From NCBI GenBank assembly GCA_020184695.1, contig JAANOX010000048.1:1-64000 (forward strand): 64,000 nucleotides of DNA, in the 5' to 3' direction. The first letter of the stretch is position 1. Every line of letters starts with the position of its first letter. Below the pieces are notes generated by a model that was not told the DNA's origin, searched no databases, and saw nothing but the letters and a program-made list of their open reading frames with translations. Below are positions 18,639 through 50,300 of this stretch, one piece after another. The stretch is from Histomonas meleagridis 2922-C6/04-290x. Taxonomy: Eukaryota > Protista > Parabasalia. A program made the translations under genes and the position numbers.

Positions 18639-19994
18639 ATGAGCAAACTTTCGCTTGGGATCGACATTGGAACAACAAAAATTGCAGTTATCGTAACAAA
18701 TATAGAAAGTAAAGAGGTTCATTTTGTTTTATCAAATAATCATAATGCTATTGTTAACACTGATGAAAATCTTTCGGAGCAAAATACTGATATATTAATT
18801 AAAAAAGCTATCAACTTAATACAAAGTATACCAGAAGACCTTAAAAAGAATATTTTATCAATTGGAGTAACTGGTCAGATGCATGGAGTAGTTGAATGGA
18901 ATTCTTCTAATTTAGTTTCCAACTTGGTTACATGGCAAGACCAAAGAGGCACGTCAACAGGTAAACTGAGTCAGATTCAAAAACTTAAAGGATGTAATAA
19001 TCTAAAAGATGGTTTTGGCTTCACAACACTTTCAATTCTCGCATCAGAAAACAAACTATCAGAGTTTGAATTTTGTGGAACAATCCATGACTATCTAGTC
19101 TGGATTTTAGTTGGAATGCCATCTAAATCTTTTATTGACACAACTGATGCAGCATCATGGGGACTCTTTAACATCGAAACAAATAGGTGGAACTCAGAAT
19201 CAGTTCATTTATTGGAAATCCCAGAAAGCATTTTACCAACAATTTACAACTGTGGTTCAAAAGCGGGACTTTTATCACAAGACATGGCCTCCAAAACAGG
19301 CATTCCATCTGGTATTCCTGTTATGGTTGCTATTGGTGATAACCAAGCATCAATAATTGGAACATCAACAAAACCATCTGCTGATGAATGCTTTATTAAT
19401 ATAGGCACATCTACACAGTTATCTGTTGTAGCTTCAAGGGAAAAAGCACTTTCTCTTTCTCCATCACCCACATTTGAAATACGACCGTTTATTGATGACA
19501 CTTTTCTTATCGTGACTGCTCCATTATGTGGTGGAAGAGCGTGGGCTTTTCTTAAAGATGTTGTTAAAGAATGGATGCATTCTCTTGGCATGCCCGAAAT
19601 TAGTGATGATATAATACTATATAGTAAGATTGATTCTTTAGCACTTAATGAAATTGATTCAAACGATTTACCAAAAATTGAACCACATTTTTTGGGAGAA
19701 AGATGGGATGAAACTCTTCGTGCATCATTTACTAATATTAACTTGAACAACTTCACATTAGGAAAAGTTGGAGCAGCTATGGCATTGGGAATTGTTTCGA
19801 ATTTGAAGTCGAACATTTCCGAAGAATGTTTCAAAGATTGTAAATCTATTTTTGTGAATGGAAATGCTGCAAGAAAGAATAAAGCAATGCATAGAGCAAT
19901 AGAAAAGACTTTCGGAATTTCTCCATCTTTTAAAGAAGGCGTTGAAGAAGCTGCTCTTGGCGCAGCAATTCTCGCAGCAAGATTAGTTGAGTAA
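18639..19994 (+). CDS. SHPK: Sedoheptulokinase-like FGGY carbohydrate kinase
   Basis: LGIDIGTT, GVTGQMHGVV.W, LVTWQDQR, CGTIHDYL, TDAASWG.F, GDNQAS, INIGTSTQLS, PHFLGER, AALGAA. Confidence 0.8.
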   Translation: MSKLSLGIDIGTTKIAVIVTNIESKEVHFVLSNNHNAIVNTDENLSEQNTDILIKKAINLIQSIPEDLKKNILSIGVTGQMHGVVEWNSSNLVSNLVTWQDQRGTSTGKLSQIQKLKGCNNLKDGFGFTTLSILASENKLSEFEFCGTIHDYLVWILVGMPSKSFIDTTDAASWGLFNIETNRWNSESVHLLEIPESILPTIYNCGSKAGLLSQDMASKTGIPSGIPVMVAIGDNQASIIGTSTKPSADECFINIGTSTQLSVVASREKALSLSPSPTFEIRPFIDDTFLIVTAPLCGGRAWAFLKDVVKEWMHSLGMPEISDDIILYSKIDSLALNEIDSNDLPKIEPHFLGERWDETLRASFTNINLNNFTLGKVGAAMALGIVSNLKSNISEECFKDCKSIFVNGNAARKNKAMHRAIEKTFGISPSFKEGVEEAALGAAILAARLVE

Positions 19995-20029
19995 AAATTA
20001 TTAGATGTCTATGAAAATTCAAGTCTGTT

Positions 20030-23000
20030 TAATGTATTCCTTGTTCTATAAGTATAAGTATAATATAGAGATTTACATTTTTTAGGTGCTAATTCCATTC
20101 CTGAAAATTTGCAAAACTTTTCAACTGTATTTAACATGTTATTCGTATTTTCTTCTGAACTAGACATTAAAATAACGTCGTCTGCATAAGCTTGAATATT
20201 AAATCTAAGTATTTCATTATTGATTTCGTCTTCAATTAATATACCATCATCTTTATTTTTAATTTAAATTGCTTTTGATAGCGGTTCTAAACATTAATTG
20301 AATAATGTAGGTGATAAAGGAAATCCTTGTTTTACACCTCGTTTGACGAATATTGGTCTAGAATTAGTTCCTTTATAATATATTTCCGTGTTTATTTAAA
20401 TTTTTGATAATATTAATGAACTTATCTGGGAAACCTTTGGCTTTTAATTCCCAAGTAATTAATTCATAAGGTAATGTGCCAAAAGCATTAATAAAATCTG
20501 AAGCTGTAATATAAATACTTTGTTTCTTCTTTCTGGCATTAGAAATTAATTCATTAATTGTTTCAATATGTCATGCTGCTTTATTAAATCCTTCTTTAAA
20601 TCCTTTTTGAACTTCATTAATAATATTGACTTTATAATTGATATTTTGAATACATTTCGAATTCAGACAAAAGATAATTCGATATAAATTGGTTACCAAG
20701 ATCTTAATTCTTCTGGTGCTTCTTTCTTATATAATAAAATACTTTTTGATGATTTCCAACTTTCTGGAATTCTTTCATATAAAATCATATAAGAAACTAT
20801 ATATTTAATAATTTTAGATGTAATATTAATATTGGATTTCCAAATTGAGTTAGAAATACCGTCAATACCATGACTACTTAAATTTGGTCTAGATCTAATG
20901 ACTTCTTTAATTCTATCTTTATCTAATAACATAGTAATGAATAAATCTTTATCTTCTTTTTCAAAACAATTATATTAATTCCATTTAGAATCATTATTAG
21001 GTGGATGAAAATCAATTTTATAGTTACATTCATTTTTAAAGAATTCTTCAAATTGATTTAAAGGGAAAGGACATTCTGGTGTAGGATTTTTACTGATATG
21101 CCAATTAATACATTTTCTAGGATCTTCTTGATATAAATTTTGAATCTTTTCTAAATATTTTTCACTTAAAATACCACTTTTGGTAGCAATTTCATCTTCT
21201 AATGTATTCTTAATCCAGTTAAATTTCATATTTCGAAATTCTTCTTCTTCATTTATAAAAGATCTAATATCTTGAATTTCTCTTCCTCCGAATGTTCTGT
21301 TAATTAATTCATCATCTAATTTATGTAAAATATTTACAAATTTATCTTCAATGATTGATATACTATTTAAGATATTTTGATTTTGTTCTCGATTATTTAA
21401 TTCTAAATATTTCTCAATATTTGAAATGAGATTTGTAATATTTCTTTCTTTTTCATAACTAATTCGTTCTCTTCTTAATTCTTCTTCGTTATTATTGTTT
21501 TTGTTTAGAATTGGTCGTCTTCTTAACATTTTGTTAATTGGGATCTTTAAAACTGTTCGAATAGTTTTTCTGACGGAAAGAATCATTTTTGCTATAATTC
21601 CTTCCATTATAAACCATTATTGATCATTAATTTGATAGTTGTTTTTAATTTTGATCTTCTTCATTAATAAAATAATTTTATTCTTTAATAATATACTTAT
21701 AGGTTTTCTCGAAGATCTTCTAATCTTCTCTGTACATTTAAATATATTAATTCCATTTAATTCTTCTCGTTCGCATTTCTTGATCCATTTTTTTGCTTTA
21801 TTTAATAAATTATCTAAATTTTCTTGTTCTAGATTATTGGGTTGATTATTATTATTAATGATAGTAATATTTGGAATAATTCTTTCTTCTTCATTTTGAT
21901 AATGTAATTGTTGATCTTCTTCATTATTATTATTAACTTTTTCTATTTGTTGATTAATTACAACATTGTTCTCAATTCTTTGAATCATTCTTCTATTTCT
22001 TAATCTTTGTCTTTCTTCACTTTCTCTTCTTCTATTAATTATTTCTTCATTATTATTATCATCATTATTGTTATTTATTTGATTTTGTTGTACTGGTTGT
22101 TGTATATTGATAGGTTCATCTTCAGCTCTTCTAATTCTTTCTCTAATGTTTTTCATTTCATCTTCATTCTCTTTACATTTAGATTTGATAAATCTAATTT
22201 TATCTTCTGTTAATTCTTTATTAATGTGAGATTTAGCAATAGCATCTTCAAATTTTCCTTGATTTCCTGCTACTCTAGATGCACCATGCATCGATTTAGC
22301 ATGTAAACCTATATTATTTATTGAGGTTCCAATGGCTCTGCAATAATTACATTCTTTAATCTTTTTGGACTTAAACAATTTCTTTATAGTTGGTGGGTTC
22401 CTTTTCAATGGATGCTTCACCCATTGTAAAATCATTGCCCAAAACCAACCATAAATGTTCTTATCTTTGTTGTATTGTGGATGAACTTTTCGAACATGAT
22501 TAGCTAATCCTGTTTTTAAGTCACCTACATATTTACAACTTGAACAAAAACAATTCCATAAAGTTTTCCGATGAGTTTTCCTTTTATTACCATTACTTTC
22601 AAATGTGATAATTTTCCAAAATGTTTTCTTATTTTAATTGATCCAATTGTTTCTAATATTTGATTCCCTTTTAATATTTTATTATGAACTTCTCTTTGAT
22701 GTATATCTAATAATGTATTAGAATGTGTTGCGAAACCACATGTATGTGAACAGACAAATGTATTAACACCTGGCCATTTCCTTTTAATAACTATTAAGTT
22801 TGTAATATAATGTTCTTCCAAGGGTTTATTATCATCTATCCAATCTGAAATATTATTAATATTATACGAAATTAATTTATCGATTATTTCTTTTAAATCT
22901 TTATCAGAGTTAACATTCCTTAACTCTTCAATTAAATCTTTTGGTTTGTGTGATAATTCTCTATTATTTTATTCATATTCATGATTATTTCTTTCATTAT

Positions 23001-24912
23001 TGTTATTATTATTTGTATTCTGTGTAACATTTACATTATTTTCATTATCATGATTTGAATTTTGAGTATTATTTTCAATATCTTGATTAATCCCTTTGTA
23101 TGTTAATTGATAATTTTGTTGTTGTTGTTATATTACATTATTATTAAATCTGAAGTTTGGTACTGGTATCTCAATGTCGATTTGTTTGGGTATTATGTTG
23201 AAATTAAATCTTGGTATATCTATGGGAACTGAAATATCTCTAAAATTATATTTCATGACATCTATATCCATTTTGATCCGATCTTCGTAGAAATCTATCT
23301 TTGGGATTTCAACAGGAACATCAATTTTACTTTCTACTAATTGATAATTTGGCTTTTCAATAGGTATTAAAATATCTTTAGGTTTATATACAAAATTAGG
23401 TATATTAACTGGAACGTCAATTTTATTTTTAACTATATTAAACTCTGGCTTTTCAATTGGTACTTGATATTTATGGTAATCTGGAATACCTATTTCGAAT
23501 GTAGTTGGATTTCTAACGTAATTCGGTATATCTATGGGATATTCTATGTCACGTTGAATTAATTGATAATTAGGAATTTCTATATTGATTGGCATTTGTG
23601 CCATAAAAAAGGCAGGAATATTAATTTCTTGATTAAATAATGTAATTTTAGTTTCTGGGATTCTAATAGGAATTATTTCACGCTCGATAGAAACTTCTGG
23701 TATTTTTATTTTAGTTTCTTCTTCATTTATATGAACTTGATTATAGTTTCCATAATTGTTTCTAAAGTTATTCTCTAATATGTGTAGGATAAAAGATAAT
23801 AGTCTATTTCTTAACTCATTTATTTTCTCATTTCTAATCATTAATTCATCACTTACTTCTTCAATAATTGGAATCGAATCACCTATTTCACAATTGATTA
23901 GTTCCCCATTATTTTTAATTTTTTTGACTCTAGGGTCATTATTCAGAGGAATTTGGGGGATATTATTGATATTGTTTAAGTCAATATTATCTATAATTAA
24001 ACCACCATCTATAAATTGAATTGGTAAACCTGGAACTGTTAAACCCATGTTTCTATTAATTAATCCTAACCAAGGTGGAGAGTTATTAAAATTAAAATCA
24101 ATGTTTCTAAATAAAATCAAAATTGGAATGTTAGAATTATTACTAATAACGTTTCTTGGTATTAAAATATTTGTCTCTGGAATTCCAAGAAATTCTCTAA
24201 CTGTAGGGATTTTGTTACGAATTTTAACATGACTAATAATTATCGACCAAATATAACCGTTAGTGGCAAATGATTGATCTAAGATTTTTAACTGGTTTAT
24301 GTGATCGGCGAAATGCTGCCGAAAATCATCAGGGTTTTTAATAAAATAATTACAATTTGGTAAAGGACATTTACGTATAACAAAATTTTCTTCATGAGTA
24401 TAAAATGAAAATGGTATTAAATTGTTGATAATATTTGGAACTTGGAATTTGATTTTTTCATATAAACAAGCGTATAATGTAAGTTCGTGAGGTAAGAAAC
24501 GCTTTAGTTGGTTGATTTCTTGTGGTTCATGCTTTTCTTCCAAATATGCATGTTTGATGCATTCTGAAAATGTATAAAAAATTCGTTGACAAAGTGGATA
24601 AAACAAACATGGGAATGTGTTTTGTGATGGAATAAGGTTGTAGGTGCTAAATTGAAGTGATTCTGTGATGGGTAAATTTATCACATTTTTCGAGATTTCT
24701 CCGTTAAGACTAATGATACCTCTAGATGTGTTGGGGTCGTTCTGGAGGTGTTCCTGTTGTGTTCTGTATAGCCTATCGATGATTTCTGGAGAAATTATCT
24801 CGAAATTATTTATCTCCGAAAAAATTTTTTCCGTCCAAAAAAAATTCTTAATAAGGTTATCAGGGGTGCTGATTACGGTAGTATCATTATCTCGACTTAA
24901 AATTGCTTGCAT
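20030..24912 (-). mobile_element. Decayed R2/NeSL-like (early-branching) non-LTR retrotransposon: zinc fingers plus RT, C-terminal endonuclease absent
   Basis: One largely colinear frame from ATG 24912, with five C2H2-like fingers. RT motifs: SHGIDGI, IPESWK.SKSILLYKK, QKGF, DFINAFGT, GVKQGFPLSPTLFN, QAYADDVIL, FSGMELAPKKC. At least 8 stops/frameshifts lie below 23130. Confidence 0.85.
23128..24912 (-). CDS. Intact 594-aa N-terminal ORF of the retroelement: two C2H2-like zinc fingers plus Ile/Pro-rich ~16-aa repeats
   Basis: C..C..H..H patterns CQRIFYTFSECIKHAYLEEKH and CPLPNCNYFIKNPDDFRQHFADH; repeats such as PIEKPNYQLVESKIDV. Ends at a TAA inside a CAA run, and the frame continues past it. 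Confidence 0.6.
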   Translation of the reverse strand: MQAILSRDNDTTVISTPDNLIKNFFWTEKIFSEINNFEIISPEIIDRLYRTQQEHLQNDPNTSRGIISLNGEISKNVINLPITESLQFSTYNLIPSQNTFPCLFYPLCQRIFYTFSECIKHAYLEEKHEPQEINQLKRFLPHELTLYACLYEKIKFQVPNIINNLIPFSFYTHEENFVIRKCPLPNCNYFIKNPDDFRQHFADHINQLKILDQSFATNGYIWSIIISHVKIRNKIPTVREFLGIPETNILIPRNVISNNSNIPILILFRNIDFNFNNSPPWLGLINRNMGLTVPGLPIQFIDGGLIIDNIDLNNINNIPQIPLNNDPRVKKIKNNGELINCEIGDSIPIIEEVSDELMIRNEKINELRNRLLSFILHILENNFRNNYGNYNQVHINEEETKIKIPEVSIEREIIPIRIPETKITLFNQEINIPAFFMAQMPINIEIPNYQLIQRDIEYPIDIPNYVRNPTTFEIGIPDYHKYQVPIEKPEFNIVKNKIDVPVNIPNFVYKPKDILIPIEKPNYQLVESKIDVPVEIPKIDFYEDRIKMDIDVMKYNFRDISVPIDIPRFNFNIIPKQIDIEIPVPNFRFNNNVI

Positions 24913-24929
24913 ATAAAAAATCAAAAAAA

Positions 24930-25002
24930 TGTACCACCCAGGACTCGAACCTGGAATCTCATGCTCCGTAGGCACACGCCTTATCCATTGGGCCAGTGGT
25001 AC
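24930..25002 (-). tRNA. tRNA-Arg (anticodon ACG)
   Basis: 73 nt. Acceptor stem GTACCAC/GTGGTAC plus discriminator A, D-arm TGGCCCAATGGATAAGGC, anticodon loop CT-ACG-GA, T-arm CCAGG-TTCGAGT-CCTGG. T7 Pol III terminator at 24923-24929. Confidence 0.95.
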
Positions 25003-25137: not shown

Positions 25138-26181
25138 TTAAAAATCCAAGGTGAAATCTAATGATTGTATTATGCCGAACAATTGATCCTCAGTTAAGTC
25201 AAATTGAGGATGAATCATTGAGTTCTTTGGTGAATCAGAGGTGAGTAGCCATGTTGGTGAATCTATTCTTGTCTTGTTGTATTCTTCTTCTCCCTTTGGC
25301 TTAAACTCTTTAAATTCTATTGAACAATCTTGTGTAACAATTGCTACAGATGCGTAATTATTAATACCGCAATAATCCGAGTTTGAGAATATTGTGATAC
25401 AGTTTCCTTCCTCTCCAAAAGGATATTCGTATCCAAATTGGCAATATTCGTGAGACCTTATTAATTTGGAAAGATTATTGGAATCCAAAAAAGACTTTAA
25501 ATTGGCCGCGTTGAAAAAGCAGCCAGCTCCTCTGTCATTAGGTTTGAAATCTTCAATGTCCATTCTTGGATCACTCCATAATATTCCATTTGATATGGGT
25601 GAATCAGATATGAGCATAGGTCGAGTTAAGCTCTCTATGTCTTCTAATGTTGTTAGCTCGGGTGTAATTCCGCCATGAACGCAAAAAATTGAGTTATTAA
25701 CAACAGCTGCAAATGGCATATAGCTAAAGCAATTAATAAACATTTCATATATTTCCGTAGACAGCTTAGTCTCGCATTCTTGCTTAAAGCCAAAAATTGA
25801 TGTTAATTCTTCACATTCATGATTTCCCCTCAAAATATAGATATTTTGTGGGTAAAGAACCTTAAGAGAAAACAACAGTAAAAGTACCTCAACACTACAT
25901 GCTCCTCTATCGACATAGTCCCCTAAAAATAGGAAATTCTGTTCTGGCGGATAATTGCATGTCTGTAAAATCCGAATGAGATCATCAACATTACCATGGA
26001 TGTCTCCAACGATGGTGATTTCTCCATTTATTCTTAAAAGGCTTTTCTCATTTTTGAAGATTTCTTGGACGTTTTCGATCAATTGGGTGATAGTCGACTG
26101 TAATGGCAGAGCTTCTTCAGAGTTTGGGTGGCGTGAGTTTAATATTTTCGAAACGACTTCGTCGAGTTCGTTGCGGTCCAT
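25138..26181 (-). CDS. PPP-family Ser/Thr protein phosphatase (PP1-like)
   Basis: GDIHG, GDYVDRG, RGNHE, HGG, WSDP, IRSHE, TIFS..DYCG. ATG at 26181. Confidence 0.92.
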   Translation of the reverse strand: MDRNELDEVVSKILNSRHPNSEEALPLQSTITQLIENVQEIFKNEKSLLRINGEITIVGDIHGNVDDLIRILQTCNYPPEQNFLFLGDYVDRGACSVEVLLLLFSLKVLYPQNIYILRGNHECEELTSIFGFKQECETKLSTEIYEMFINCFSYMPFAAVVNNSIFCVHGGITPELTTLEDIESLTRPMLISDSPISNGILWSDPRMDIEDFKPNDRGAGCFFNAANLKSFLDSNNLSKLIRSHEYCQFGYEYPFGEEGNCITIFSNSDYCGINNYASVAIVTQDCSIEFKEFKPKGEEEYNKTRIDSPTWLLTSDSPKNSMIHPQFDLTEDQLFGIIQSLDFTLDF

Positions 26182-26992
26182 CCCAAACAAAATCTGACAA
26201 ACCGTAAATTCTATTCATTGCACTTGCCGATTAATTGTGACTGAAGATCAAACAAACTTCGTAAAACGAAATTGAGAGAATAAATGGTTTCATAAAATCT
26301 ATCTCAAGGGTACATTCGCACGCAATTCCATTGAATGAGTATATAACTTATTTTTATCACAAAACTCTAGTTATTCCCTTGTTAAGGCTTAAGCCTTAAA
26401 CCCAAAATTTGATCAAATAAAATACATTTTACTTATTGTGCTATTCTTTTTTTCGACAGATAATTTAAATGAACTTAAACCTGATACCTTTATGTAGTGG
26501 TGGGCACATATACTTTATGTCTTGCTTAATGAATATAAATTCTTCAAATAACAATGGCAAATTTTCTTCAATTCTTTATTTCAACTAAATTAAGGCTAAA
26601 TTTGAGACCCCAACAACAATGGTATAATATTCACCATGCAAAAACATTAAAATTCAATTTTTATAAATTAATGAAAATTAGCAAAATATTTTATTAAGGC
26701 AAATACAAACACAAGCTAGCTAATGCCACAAACTTTTGGTGAATTTATTATGGAAGAATTCTATGTTTTGAAAAATACTATATATATGTATAATATTAAA
26801 TGAACGAATTCACTTTTTTCGTAACTACTTGAACAACCGCTCACGCTGTACTTGTGTTTAAATTTAAACAAAACTAATTATAAAGAAACAAATCGAATCA
26901 AGAATCAATCAAAATTTTAAATTAAAATGAATTGAAATATATAATGTCCTAGATGTGGTTAATCTGTTATTAAAGACTATTTCTTTTATTTC

Positions 26993-46209: not shown

Positions 46210-47109
46210 ATGTGGTCAGAGTATTCCAATAGTAAAATTCCTTCCCAAGGAATTATAACTTCTATTGCATTTTCATCAAACAGTCGAAGCTTCGCACTTG
46301 GCCTTAGCAGTGGATGGATATATATTTATCATATGGATCCAAATGAAACATTTCAAAAGAAACCAATTTTTACATGTGCAATAAATTGTATCACTTGGTC
46401 AAGAGATGATAAGTATTTAGTTTTGTGCTCAGAAGATTGCAAAGTTTGTTTAATAAATTCATCAACCTTAAAAATTGTTCGCGAATATTTTGGTTCTCTT
46501 GAAGCTCTTTATGCTTGCGATATTTCAAGGTATAATGATAGAATTGTTGCAGGCGGTCGAGACACAATGATACATCTTTGGTCAACATCTACTTCAGATC
46601 ACATTGATTTTATTTCAGCTCACAGAGAGGTTATTACTTCTATTCATTTCAGTAGTGATGGTCAGTTTATTCTCACGTCTGCTCTTGATGGTCTTTGTCG
46701 AATCTTTAATACTAATAACCTATTACTTCTTCGTACTTATGTCACAAATGGGGGCTTTACAACATATTCAACATTTTGTCCTAGTGAAAAATATATTTTT
46801 GCATCCACAACAGATAATAGTTTAAACTTAATTAGTATTCGAGAAAATCGTGTAATTGCATCATACAAAGGTCACATTGATACAAAGCTTCGTGCTTCAA
46901 TTTTTGTACGAAATAGGGAAATGAATGTTGAAGTAATTGTTCCATCAGATGATGGAAGTGTTAAATGTTATAATGCAATTGATGGAAATATCCTTTGGGA
47001 TATAAACCTTGGAGAATCTCCCGGATTGATGATTGGAGTATCTCCTGACTCAGAGTTTATTGTAGTAACGAAAAAAAAGAATTTTATAGTATTCAAGAGA
47101 AACGAATGA
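46210..47109 (+). CDS. WD40-repeat protein (WDR5/SWD3-like)
   Basis: Repeats: INCITWSRDDKYLV.CSED, AGGRD..IHLW, AHREVITSIHFSSDG..ILTSALDG.CRIF, YKGH. Confidence 0.85.
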   Translation: MWSEYSNSKIPSQGIITSIAFSSNSRSFALGLSSGWIYIYHMDPNETFQKKPIFTCAINCITWSRDDKYLVLCSEDCKVCLINSSTLKIVREYFGSLEALYACDISRYNDRIVAGGRDTMIHLWSTSTSDHIDFISAHREVITSIHFSSDGQFILTSALDGLCRIFNTNNLLLLRTYVTNGGFTTYSTFCPSEKYIFASTTDNSLNLISIRENRVIASYKGHIDTKLRASIFVRNREMNVEVIVPSDDGSVKCYNAIDGNILWDINLGESPGLMIGVSPDSEFIVVTKKKNFIVFKRNE

Positions 47110-47360
47110 AATTAATAGGGATAATTATTTATGTAAATATTATTTTCGAATTTCTTGTGATTATTTTTTTTGACATGATAATTTCAAAAATTTATTCTTT
47201 ATACAAGCTTTCTGAATTAAATTTTCTCGACATTGAGATATATTTACGAAGGGGGTAAAAATGGCTCGAACATTTAAGAGTTCACAACATGAAGTAATTA
47301 AACGTTCATGGTCACTTTTTACATCCTTCACTCAGCAAGCAATCATCAACAAAAAAATAT

Positions 47361-50300
47361 ATGAGTGAAAGAGATGAACTTTGTCGTGATATCAAATGCT
47401 TGCTTGATGGGTTTCAAATCGAATTTTCTTTGCTTGATCACGAAAAAATAATTGATGCACTTTTATCAATGGAACAAAAATATTCTCCTTATCAAGGCCA
47501 TGAGGATATGCTTAATAATTGTCTTGGAATGATGTTTAATTATGGAATTAGAAAATCTATTGATCTTATGAATATGAAAACAGAAAGAAGTTATCCAATT
47601 GGCAAAAAATTTATGAAAATGATAACAATATTTGTATCTTTTTATAATTCACATGACAAAGATTTATATATAAAATCATTAATAAACATTATAACAGACT
47701 CATTAGATGAGAAACCAATTAGATTACCATCAATCAATCTTAGAGATGAGAAAAAATTTAGTTCAACTGAAATTTTTTCTCATCTTGGGTCGACAAAATT
47801 TTTAATTCAAGTTTTAATATCAATACTTTCACAACATATTTTTAATGATGTTTCACTTCTTTTTGTTATCTTTAAATGTCTTCAAAACGAAAATATTGAC
47901 ATCCAATATTTAGGTTTAAAATGTTTATCACGAATAAATTTTTATTCCACACAAATCAATTTCCAAGAAATCCGAGTTTTAATTGAATGCTTAAAAACCA
48001 ATTTAATCGGAGTCTATGAAGTTTATCCCAAATCGGACAAATTTTGGTCACTTTCATTTAATAATTCCATTCGATATCTTTTTAAATATATCCAAATATT
48101 AATTGGTAAAGAATTATTTAGTATAATTTCGGTGATAACATTTATATCAGATTTACCACAAACTACGAAAACAATTTTTCAATTAATTGATCAATTTTTA
48201 ACAAATGATAAATCTTCATATGATATGTCAATGACAATATTTAACAAAATATTTCCATTTTTTTATCATTCAGAAGAATTCATTAAGATATGTAAAGAAA
48301 TATCATTATATGAACCAAATTTTATAAATAAATTATTAAAATCATATTCAAATGATATAAAATATATAATTTCATTATCGAAAATCATTGATATTGAACA
48401 AATTCATATATTTAATAATCATTTTAATAACATTGATCCTAATTATATATATCCATTAGTTTCAGCATATAAAAAAGAAAATATGCCGAAACAATTAAAG
48501 ATATATATAAAAGAATCAATTATGAATATACCTCCAATGGTTAACTATATAAAACCTTTATTGAGTTTTGCATTTGATGAAATATTATCACAAATTATAC
48601 GTTATCATCCAAGAGATGTATTATATATATTAAAATTAATAAAAGAAATTAAAGAATGGAATCAAATACAAAATTCATTTAAAGAACAAATTATTAGTTA
48701 TGCATTAAATAGTGAATCATTAGAGTTAATATCATTTGTAGCATTATATTCATTACAATATAATACTTTTAAAGATATAATTAAAACAAATTCTTCAATA
48801 ATTAATTCATATGAATCGAAAAGTTTCATTCAAGTTTTACCAAAAATTTTTAATGAAAATTATAAAGAATTAATTCCAAATAATTTAATTATCGAATTAT
48901 TTAAGTTATCAAAGTTTAAAGCAATTAATAATATAATACAAAGATCTGAATTTTGGAACATATTTTTAGAACAATATTTCCAAATATTTGAAGAGTTCGA
49001 TGATTATTTAGTTGCAAATGCATTGTATTTCTTAAAGAATTATCCAAAATTACGCGAAGTTATAATATTAAATAAGTTTTATGTTGTTCGACGAATATTT
49101 AATTTAATTAAAGATGATGATAACTTAAAAATTTCAAATAGAAATCGTAAAATTAGATATTGTTCAATGTGTAGAGATCATTTTTTTAAAGATTTATTTG
49201 GATTAGATCAAATTAAATATTCATTAATACCCGTTTTAATTAGTGAAGGAAACATTAATTTGTTAAATGATTTTTCGAATTTATTACTAAATTTAAATCA
49301 AAATTTAATACAAAGATTAAAAAGTACTATCGATAACTTAATATCACAAGTTGAAACTCGAATTGATTTCTTAAATTTATTAATGGAATTAAATAATAAT
49401 CTTTCAAATTTATTAAAAATTACGAATAATGATTTATCAAATTTATTAAAGTTTAAAATCGATCAAAAGATAATTTTGACTTTCTTAAATGATTTACATA
49501 AGAAAATATTTGATATATTAAAAACAAATTCCGATTTTTTTGAATTTTCTAAAACAACAAATTTTGAGTTTTTAAGTTTATTTAAAGATTTAAATCAAAA
49601 GATTTCAACAGTTTTAAATTTAATATCAGAAAGTTCTATTGAAACCACGACAGAAGAAAATGGTAATAATTATAAACAAATTGATATTATATTACTTAAA
49701 TTATTAATCACTACAATAAATGATGCATCAGAATTATCGAAAGTTACAGTGAATGATTTAGTTAGAGATTGTTCATCTGAAATATTTACATATTTATTTG
49801 GTTATGTACCACGAAATATTGCAACAACTGGAATCATAACATTAAATAAATTAAAAATAAATCCAAATGATTTACATTATGGTCATACATTATTAAAAGA
49901 ATCGAAATGTTTAGCAGAAGTATCATCACAAGTATTTTTATTGTTAGGACATCCTTCACGAGAAATTCGAATTCAAGCATTAAAAGGTGTTGGAATTTTA
50001 GGCTCATTACATGAAGCATTAAATATCTTTAAAATAGAATCTGTTCCACCAGAGAAGAAAACACAAGTTTTATATTCTAAATTATGGGAAAAACATTTTT
50101 TAAATACAATTTTGAAATTTTCGATAATTTTAGGTAATAAAAATAAACAAATTTGTTTTAAATTAATGATAGTTAAATCATTATTATTTAGTATTAAGTC
50201 AAATTATTTCGAGAATTTAATTGACATTTTTTTTCCTAAATTAACTTCTTGTATAGATATAGCAATACAATATCCAGAACTAAGAGAAAAATGTTTAAAG

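Follow-up and report, generated by a model that had tools for sequence, protein, structure and literature searches.

Retrotransposons without long terminal repeats (non-LTR elements) that carry a restriction-like endonuclease (RLE) and are specific to a single transfer RNA (tRNA) gene have been described in a parabasalid and in a planarian. According to the survey by Kojima & Jurka (2015, PMC4640811), NeSL-1_TV from Trichomonas vaginalis is specific to the tRNA-Pro gene, although the authors did not resolve where it belongs in the phylogeny. The same text assigns the planarian Schmidtea elements LIN15_SM, which targets tRNA-Arg, and LIN25_SM, which targets tRNA-Glu, to the R5/LIN lineage of the NeSL clade (PMC4640811). 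The R2 elements, which show strict site specificity for a multicopy RNA gene (28S rDNA), encode a single open reading frame (ORF) with N-terminal zinc fingers, a reverse transcriptase (RT), a CCHC motif and a PD-(D/E)XK nuclease (structures 9nl2, 9dou and 8gh6). Here we analyse a 64-kb stretch of contig JAANOX010000048.1 from Histomonas meleagridis (hereafter the window), in which an element of this kind begins directly behind a tRNA-Arg(ACG) gene. We conclude, with a probability of roughly 85%, that the window contains a dead copy of a ~6.7-kb single-ORF R2/NeSL-type non-LTR retrotransposon, here called family A, which inserts only into tRNA-Arg(ACG) genes. The host genome (Histomonas-like, 43.1 Mb, 281 contigs) was searched as assembled contigs.

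The sole tRNA gene in the window is tRNA-Arg(ACG), identified by ARAGORN at 24930-25002 on the minus strand and supported by an Rfam tRNA score of 53.6 bits. On this strand the discriminator base A is followed by TTTTTTT-GA-TTTTTT-AT and then by an ATG at 24912-24910, which is 17 nt past the discriminator base; the spacer and the distance both agree with the first-pass annotation of the window. That annotation had proposed either a tRNA-targeted family or a long interspersed nuclear element (LINE) using a complete tRNA as its RNA polymerase III (Pol III) promoter or 5' head. A search with the element DNA identified copies on C227 (three), C259, C279, C159/C60 and C48, plus fragments, with 86-95% identity to the window copy. 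They are spread over five or six contigs, as C159 and C60 probably join. When the 5' flanks were tabulated genome-wide, all seven copies retaining element position 1 were found to abut tRNA-Arg(ACG) at the same nucleotide, the tRNA gene ending exactly one base earlier. The element always begins at the nucleotide after the discriminator base (tRNA position 73), with a perfectly conserved tRNA upstream and a T-run that probably comes from the insert.

The genome contains 11 identical tRNA-Arg(ACG) genes, seven of them occupied and four empty (C268, C153, C18 and C11). The empty genes have their own T-run terminators, ordinary ORF neighbours and no element remnant; the GA-T6 leader, common to six of the seven occupied genes, differs at all four. 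Among the occupied genes (21 pairs), the tRNA shows no mismatches at all, the 73 nt that follow it differ at 15.7 positions on average, and the 73 nt upstream differ at 42, about the random level. Homology between copies ends 2-30 nt 5' of the tRNA, except for C227b and C227c, whose upstream flanks match over ~155 nt (92.6% identity). Thus, the tRNA marks the start of the repeat unit, which lies in independent flanks. The adjacency to tRNA genes is far beyond chance. The ATG lies 11-17 nt past the discriminator base in an intact metagenome relative and in six of the seven family-A copies, and to judge from these sequences a start codon so close to the tRNA 3' end is a conserved trait of these elements and no accident of the window copy.

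The 3' junction is preserved in the complete copy C227a, which extends from the tRNA at C227:99016-99088 to C227:116950 and measures ~6.7 kb excluding an unrelated ~11-kb insertion. Its 3' untranslated region (UTR) runs for ~90 nt past the stop codon and ends in ...GCTAATAAACAG, the element terminus being AATAAACAG. Behind it follow TCCTGGGTGGTACA, which is the final 14 nt of the tRNA, then T7GAT6, 26 nt of the element 5' end and unrelated sequence. The stretch TCCTGGGTGGTACA occurs 12 times in the genome, 11 times in the tRNA-Arg(ACG) genes and once at C227:116951, right behind the 3' UTR of C227a. The insertion site is fixed, with 7/7 5' junctions at one nucleotide and the single 3' junction in the T-loop. 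The window copy has no second TCCTGGGTGGTACA repeat because it is truncated. A 57-nt target duplication at C227a was also considered and rejected, since 41 of these nucleotides are element sequence in all copies and are absent at the empty sites.

C227a has an open 954-aa ORF with RT (RVT_1, E = 2.6e-34), CCHC and PD-(D/E)XK domains. Its residues C784, C787, H797, C802, P857-D858, E871 and K897 are invariant over 14 aligned relatives, and the CCHC and nuclease residues align to the CCHC/KPD stretch of R2. The best relatives with solved structures (PDB) are R2 proteins (E = 2.6e-42, versus 1e-21 for LINE-1), and the named database matches are all annotated as hypothetical proteins, such as TRFO_42619 of Tritrichomonas foetus. 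Pfam detected no apurinic/apyrimidinic endonuclease (APE) domain in C227a and no Ulp1-like protease domain in any of the element pieces scanned, and a Myb domain was not found in the family-A element. The metagenome relative L073 has an intact single ORF of 2210 aa, which starts 11 nt past a tRNA tail and encodes, in order, an N-terminal region, two fingers, IP-x-Y/F repeats, an N-rich linker, three fingers, RT, CCHC, RLE and an acidic tail. The broken frames of family A are collinear with this ORF, which points to a single ORF in this family as well. The 594-aa frame of the first-pass annotation, which was confirmed and runs from the ATG at 24912 to a stop at 23128, is for the same reason predicted to be the front of a once ~2200-aa ORF; C227a reads through the position of that stop. 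Every feature tested for the RLE/R2 group was found (RT, CCHC plus RLE without APE, N-terminal fingers and a fixed site), and family A is classified by sequence as a member of this group.

The window copy itself is a dead, 3'-truncated and otherwise ordinary relic. Its RT shares 74% amino acid identity with the intact RT of C227a and retains YADD at ~20190, and the last piece gives a weak RVT_1 match (E = 6e-4), in line with the RT motifs recognized earlier. All five C2H2-like fingers of the first-pass annotation were likewise recovered. The single long frame that was said to carry both does not exist in the window copy: the region of fingers 3-5 (22286-22821, minus strand) is split over two frames, ten stop codons fall within the RT stretch (20009-21397), and the copy as a whole contains more than ten stops and frameshifts. 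Position 20026, where its homology to C227a and C60 stops, was rejected as the true 3' end of the family, since these two copies run on together for another ~1.75 kb. The window copy has thus been left without its last ~1.8 kb, comprising the RT thumb, the CCHC motif, the RLE nuclease, the 3' UTR and the 3' junction, a truncation that the first-pass annotation had not noticed. The 3'-truncated family-A copies end at element positions ~1295, ~1623, ~2809, ~4904 and ~5350.

Related elements appear to be associated with other tRNA species. The RT of a second family (B) is 45-50% identical to that of family A, and its 3' end reads ...AATAAACAA followed by (A/G)TCCCGTCGAAGGTG and a T-run. Of the 17 genomic occurrences of TCCCGTCGAAGGTG, 12 close a tRNA gene at its 3' end and five are solo tails, and four family-B copies (Table 1) are bracketed by a complete tRNA on one side and, 6.7-7.1 kb downstream, by a solo tail of 14 nt. 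Different 14-nt TCC... tails, likewise followed by T-runs, terminate family C and the metagenome relatives L076 and L077. In L073, a tandem arrangement of 3' end, tail, whole element and tail was found. The tRNA tails are visible in three of the five close metagenome relatives (L073, L076 and L077). ARAGORN found no complete tRNA adjoining these five relatives among 40 metagenome loci, in which the contigs start or end at the repeat. Among the 63 best tRNA hits in the Histomonas-like genome, an RT match lies on the same strand within 8 kb downstream in 12 cases, with ~0.2 expected (Poisson P ~ 2e-17), and the tRNA-RT spacings group by tRNA score class (~3.5 kb, ~3.16 kb and 1.0-2.0 kb). Between families, the N-terminal regions are 25-35% identical, versus 44-50% for the RT-RLE part, and the TCC start of the tail is common to all. 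Solo tails followed by the 5' starts of further copies were observed at C227:116965-117005, on C14, on C57/C160 and in L073, suggesting repeated hits on one rebuilt gene. Each family appears to be tied to one tRNA species, cutting at the same T-loop position and restoring the gene.

We propose that, as in R2, the RLE would nick the antisense strand in the T-loop/B box at about positions 57-60. The freed 3'-OH would prime cDNA synthesis on the element RNA at its 3' UTR, and the sense strand would be cut at or beyond the tRNA 3' end, both again by analogy with R2. A duplication of at least 14 nt would leave a whole tRNA gene upstream of the insert, and the first bases of the element, T7-GA-T6, would act as the Pol III terminator of the rebuilt gene. 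Because the insert would supply this terminator, the host would lose no tRNA gene. The five N-terminal C2H2 fingers may read the particular tRNA gene, a likely role since the sister families, with their divergent N-termini, sit in other tRNAs. The rebuilt gene could then be hit again, so that earlier insertions would come to be stacked further downstream, each behind a solo tail. At some later time, the window copy would have lost its 3' third and its reading frame.

The first-pass alternative makes the tRNA part of the element: a LINE with a whole-tRNA 5' head whose A and B boxes form a Pol III promoter, each transposition adding a tRNA-Arg gene. It fits a repeat unit that starts at the tRNA 5' end in 7/7 copies, a T7-GA-T6 spacer in 6/7 and the linkage of seven of the 11 tRNA-Arg(ACG) genes to the element. 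Nevertheless, it must be regarded as very improbable. A Pol III transcript would meet the T7 terminator directly behind the tRNA and many more T-runs in the 6.7-kb AT-rich body. The head also does not move with the element, as the stacked or tandem copies (C227:116951 and L073) are preceded by the last 14-16 nt of the tRNA only and never by positions 1-59. Such solo 3'-end tails would be expected if a gene already in place were cut in a staggered manner, and four identical tRNA-Arg genes are empty. Segmental duplication of one tRNA-plus-element block, without any targeting, is scarcely credible as a general explanation. The shared upstream sequence of C227b and C227c, the near identity of C227a and C227c and the presence of three copies within 30 kb of C227 would agree with it. 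Against it, the remaining copies have upstream flanks with no relation to each other beyond 2-30 nt ahead of the tRNA, five or six contigs are involved, and the same pattern with solo tails recurs at other tRNAs in the sister families. This explanation is thus refuted generally and holds at most for the C227b/C227c pair.

A third alternative retains the targeting and dispenses with the target duplication: the 5' end of the element RNA would carry the last 14 nt of the tRNA, and the element would insert at 59/60 and replace the end of the gene, in the manner of bacterial integrative elements at tRNA genes. The final DNA would be identical to that left by a 14-nt duplication, tandems of tail plus element fit equally well, and R2 RNAs of some species carry upstream target sequence. 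On the other side, staggered RLE cuts with duplications of 10-50 bp are known, for example the 20-bp target-site duplications of reptile Utopia (PMC4640811). No result of this analysis counts against a carried tail. The two routes are inseparable from DNA because the tails and tRNAs are identical in sequence; we consider a carried tail possible, if rather unlikely.

Several points weigh against our preferred interpretation, a targeted element that rebuilds its tRNA gene by duplication. We infer the cleavage sites and the role of the fingers. The 3' junction is preserved in one family-A copy only, and the tail of C227a is followed by 41 nt of the element 5' end (C227:116965-117005), which we tentatively interpret as an older insertion stacked there. 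This junction is ambiguous by 2 nt, as AG is present both at the element end and in the tRNA, so that the repeat measures 14-16 nt, and the T7 can be assigned to the element or to the target. Most family-A copies are truncated at the 3' end, the opposite of the usual 5' truncation of LINEs, a pattern for which our interpretation does not account. The link of the sister families to their tRNAs was drawn from coordinates, Rfam score classes and tail patterns. Overall, the census, the 3' junction and the sister families support the tRNA-targeted RLE-type (R2/NeSL-like) family that the first-pass annotation had offered as one option, whereas the tail-only stacked copies, the empty genes and the T7 terminator speak against the other option, a tRNA promoter or head.

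A further idea concerns expression of the element. The rebuilt tRNA might serve as an RNase Z signal, a read-through transcript from an upstream gene being cut at the tRNA 3' end to give the exact 5' end of the element RNA; this would be a tRNA-processing counterpart to the hepatitis delta virus (HDV)-like ribozyme of R2. We regard it as a long shot. No initiator (Inr)-like motif is present at the 5' start. When the element, its 5' junction and its 3' UTR were scanned with Rfam, the tRNA was the sole match; neither a ribozyme, HDV-like or otherwise, nor an R2 3' UTR element was detected. In the 1.5 kb upstream of the 11 genes (L031-L041), the nearest ORF is co-directional at five of the seven occupied tRNA-Arg genes and divergent at 4/4 empty ones. 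One of these five is the phosphatase gene of the window, and another is the ORF of another element copy. This orientation bias is a weak hint from small numbers and serves as a lead only.

Compared with the described systems, family A resembles NeSL-1_TV as a parabasalid RLE-type non-LTR retrotransposon specific to one tRNA gene and differs in its target, tRNA-Arg(ACG) in the Histomonas-like host versus tRNA-Pro, a comparison based on reported specificity (PMC4640811). The first-pass statement that nothing of the kind had been described for parabasalids is therefore out of date. LIN15_SM and LIN25_SM are likewise RLE-type elements specific to single tRNA species, with targets that diversify inside one lineage. 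In contrast to family A, they have an animal host, they seem to be inserted closer to the 5' end of the tRNA, so that more of its 3' part follows the element, and the rebuilding of an intact gene is not described in the survey (PMC4640811). Family A shares the tRNA-gene specificity of all three elements and lacks the N-terminal Ulp1-like protease, a trait of nematode NeSL and one Utopia only and not of the whole clade. For such elements in Histomonas, no paper was found in the literature.

The likeness to R2 extends to the domain order of the single ORF and to strict specificity for a multicopy RNA gene. However, R2 inactivates the 28S gene, is co-transcribed with it and is freed by its ribozyme, whereas in family A the gene that is entered is made whole again, the ORF is separated from it by a Pol III terminator, and Rfam detects no ribozyme. 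TRE5/TRE3 of Dictyostelium and Ty3 of yeast are also retroelements found beside tRNA genes. TFIIIB/TFIIIC direct them to positions some way outside the coding part of any Pol III gene, and they rely on an APE nuclease or an integrase. In contrast, family A inserts at one nucleotide inside the gene of one tRNA species with an RLE nuclease; its junctions lie in or at the tRNA, and not at the fixed spacing from any tRNA gene, beyond the coding region, that characterizes those elements. The parallel with TRE3 and Ty3 drawn in the first-pass annotation is thus valid for tRNA adjacency and otherwise only loose, given insertion inside the coding sequence of a single tRNA species. Bacterial phages and integrative elements at tRNA 3' ends also insert into the 3' part and reconstitute the gene, but through a tyrosine integrase and an attP that carries the tRNA end, and they provide an analogy only.

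Table 1. Features of the family-A copy in the window (window coordinates) and positions of the bracketed family-B copies (contig coordinates).
Feature	Position	Strand	Remarks
tRNA-Arg(ACG) gene, presumed target, rebuilt intact	24930..25002	-	100% identity to 10 other genomic copies
Final 14 nt of the tRNA, TCCTGGGTGGTACA	24930..24943	-	Same stretch recurs at the 3' junction of the complete copy
17-nt leader, T7-GA-T6-AT	24913..24929	-	First bases of the repeat unit; putative Pol III terminator for the rebuilt tRNA
594-aa remnant, probable N-terminal part of the single element ORF	23128..24912	-	Fingers 1 and 2, IP-x-Y/F repeats
Finger 1	24529-24609	-	C-x(2-5)-C...H-x(3-5)-H pattern; start 24609
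Finger 2	24301-24369	-	C-x(2-5)-C...H-x(3-5)-H pattern; start 24369
Finger 3	22684-22752	-	Weak zf-C2H2 Pfam match, E = 1.5e-5; start 22752
Finger 4	22481-22546	-	C-x(2-5)-C...H-x(3-5)-H pattern; start 22546
Finger 5	22286-22351	-	C-x(2-5)-C...H-x(3-5)-H pattern; start 22351
Charged low-complexity linker, fingers to RT	21398..22285	-	Collinear with sister copies
Decayed RT, residues 1-470 of the 954-aa RT-RLE ORF of C227a	20026..21397	-	Breaks off past RT motif 6
3' breakpoint	20020..20030		Homology to C227a and C60 stops at 20026
Family-B bracketed copy	C153 270531 to 277240
Family-B bracketed copy	C61 361457 to 354762
Family-B bracketed copy	C29 220848 to 227611
Family-B bracketed copy	C14 74552 to 67451

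The window copy is flanked by a convergent FGGY kinase gene, whose stop codon at 19992-19994 is 31 nt from the breakpoint, and by a Ser/Thr phosphatase gene (25138-26190, minus strand), which ends 135 nt ahead of the tRNA-Arg gene. Between fingers 2 and 3 (~23131-23800, minus strand), it encodes ~10 tandem IP-x-(Y/F) peptide units, which match no Pfam family and are kept in metagenome relatives (L073:1300-1940 and L074:40-680). The 3' UTR of every family contains a G+C-rich hairpin 55-70 nt ahead of the 3' end (L046:6900-6915, L056:2314-2327, L067:2651-2662, L073:6707-6724 and L076:6353-6366). Its stems vary by paired changes (AGCG/CGCT, GACG/CGTC, CCGGTG/CACCGG and AGGCG/CGCCT) and its loops are GNRN-like, making it a candidate RT-binding signal for target-primed reverse transcription.

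A stretch of ~30 kb on C227 (C227:99000-132000) contains three occupied tRNA-Arg(ACG) genes together with a solo tail and loose fragments, and C227a and C227c are 99.4% identical across 2.7 kb; duplication or gene conversion has shaped this local cluster. The ~11-kb insertion that splits C227a (C227:99184-110189; L045:4185-10000 and L046:1-190) has terminal inverted repeats of ~190 nt (TACTCTCCAA.../...TTGGAGAGTA), a 10-bp duplication (TTCTTTTTGG) and no ORF of at least 150 aa across its first 5.8 kb. A third copy of the terminal repeat lies near C227c (L047:7713-7909), and the insertion looks like a non-autonomous MULE-like DNA transposon. Copy C60 stops ~175 nt short of the element 3' end and adjoins a tandem array of ~200-nt units (L048, reverse strand, 2440-2900; C60:~47100-47560). 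Several tRNA species are present in the genome as many identical copies, with Rfam score classes of 8, 15, 7 and 15 members, and some of these multicopy classes coincide with a downstream RT (five of the seven genes in one class).

Thus, tRNA-specific RLE elements such as NeSL-1_TV were already known, and what is new is the family specific to tRNA-Arg(ACG). For genome annotation, these elements account for ORFs that start directly behind tRNA genes, and for the many tRNA species whose genes are present in large numbers of identical copies with solo 14-nt tRNA tails behind them. The genome of this poultry parasite holds a radiation of R2-like retrotransposons comprising at least three families (A, B and C) with distinct tRNA tails. 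They represent a natural set of related proteins with differing, precisely known DNA targets, which is useful for understanding how RLE elements switch target. This question now has practical weight, since work is under way to adapt R2 proteins as tools for inserting genes at chosen sites.

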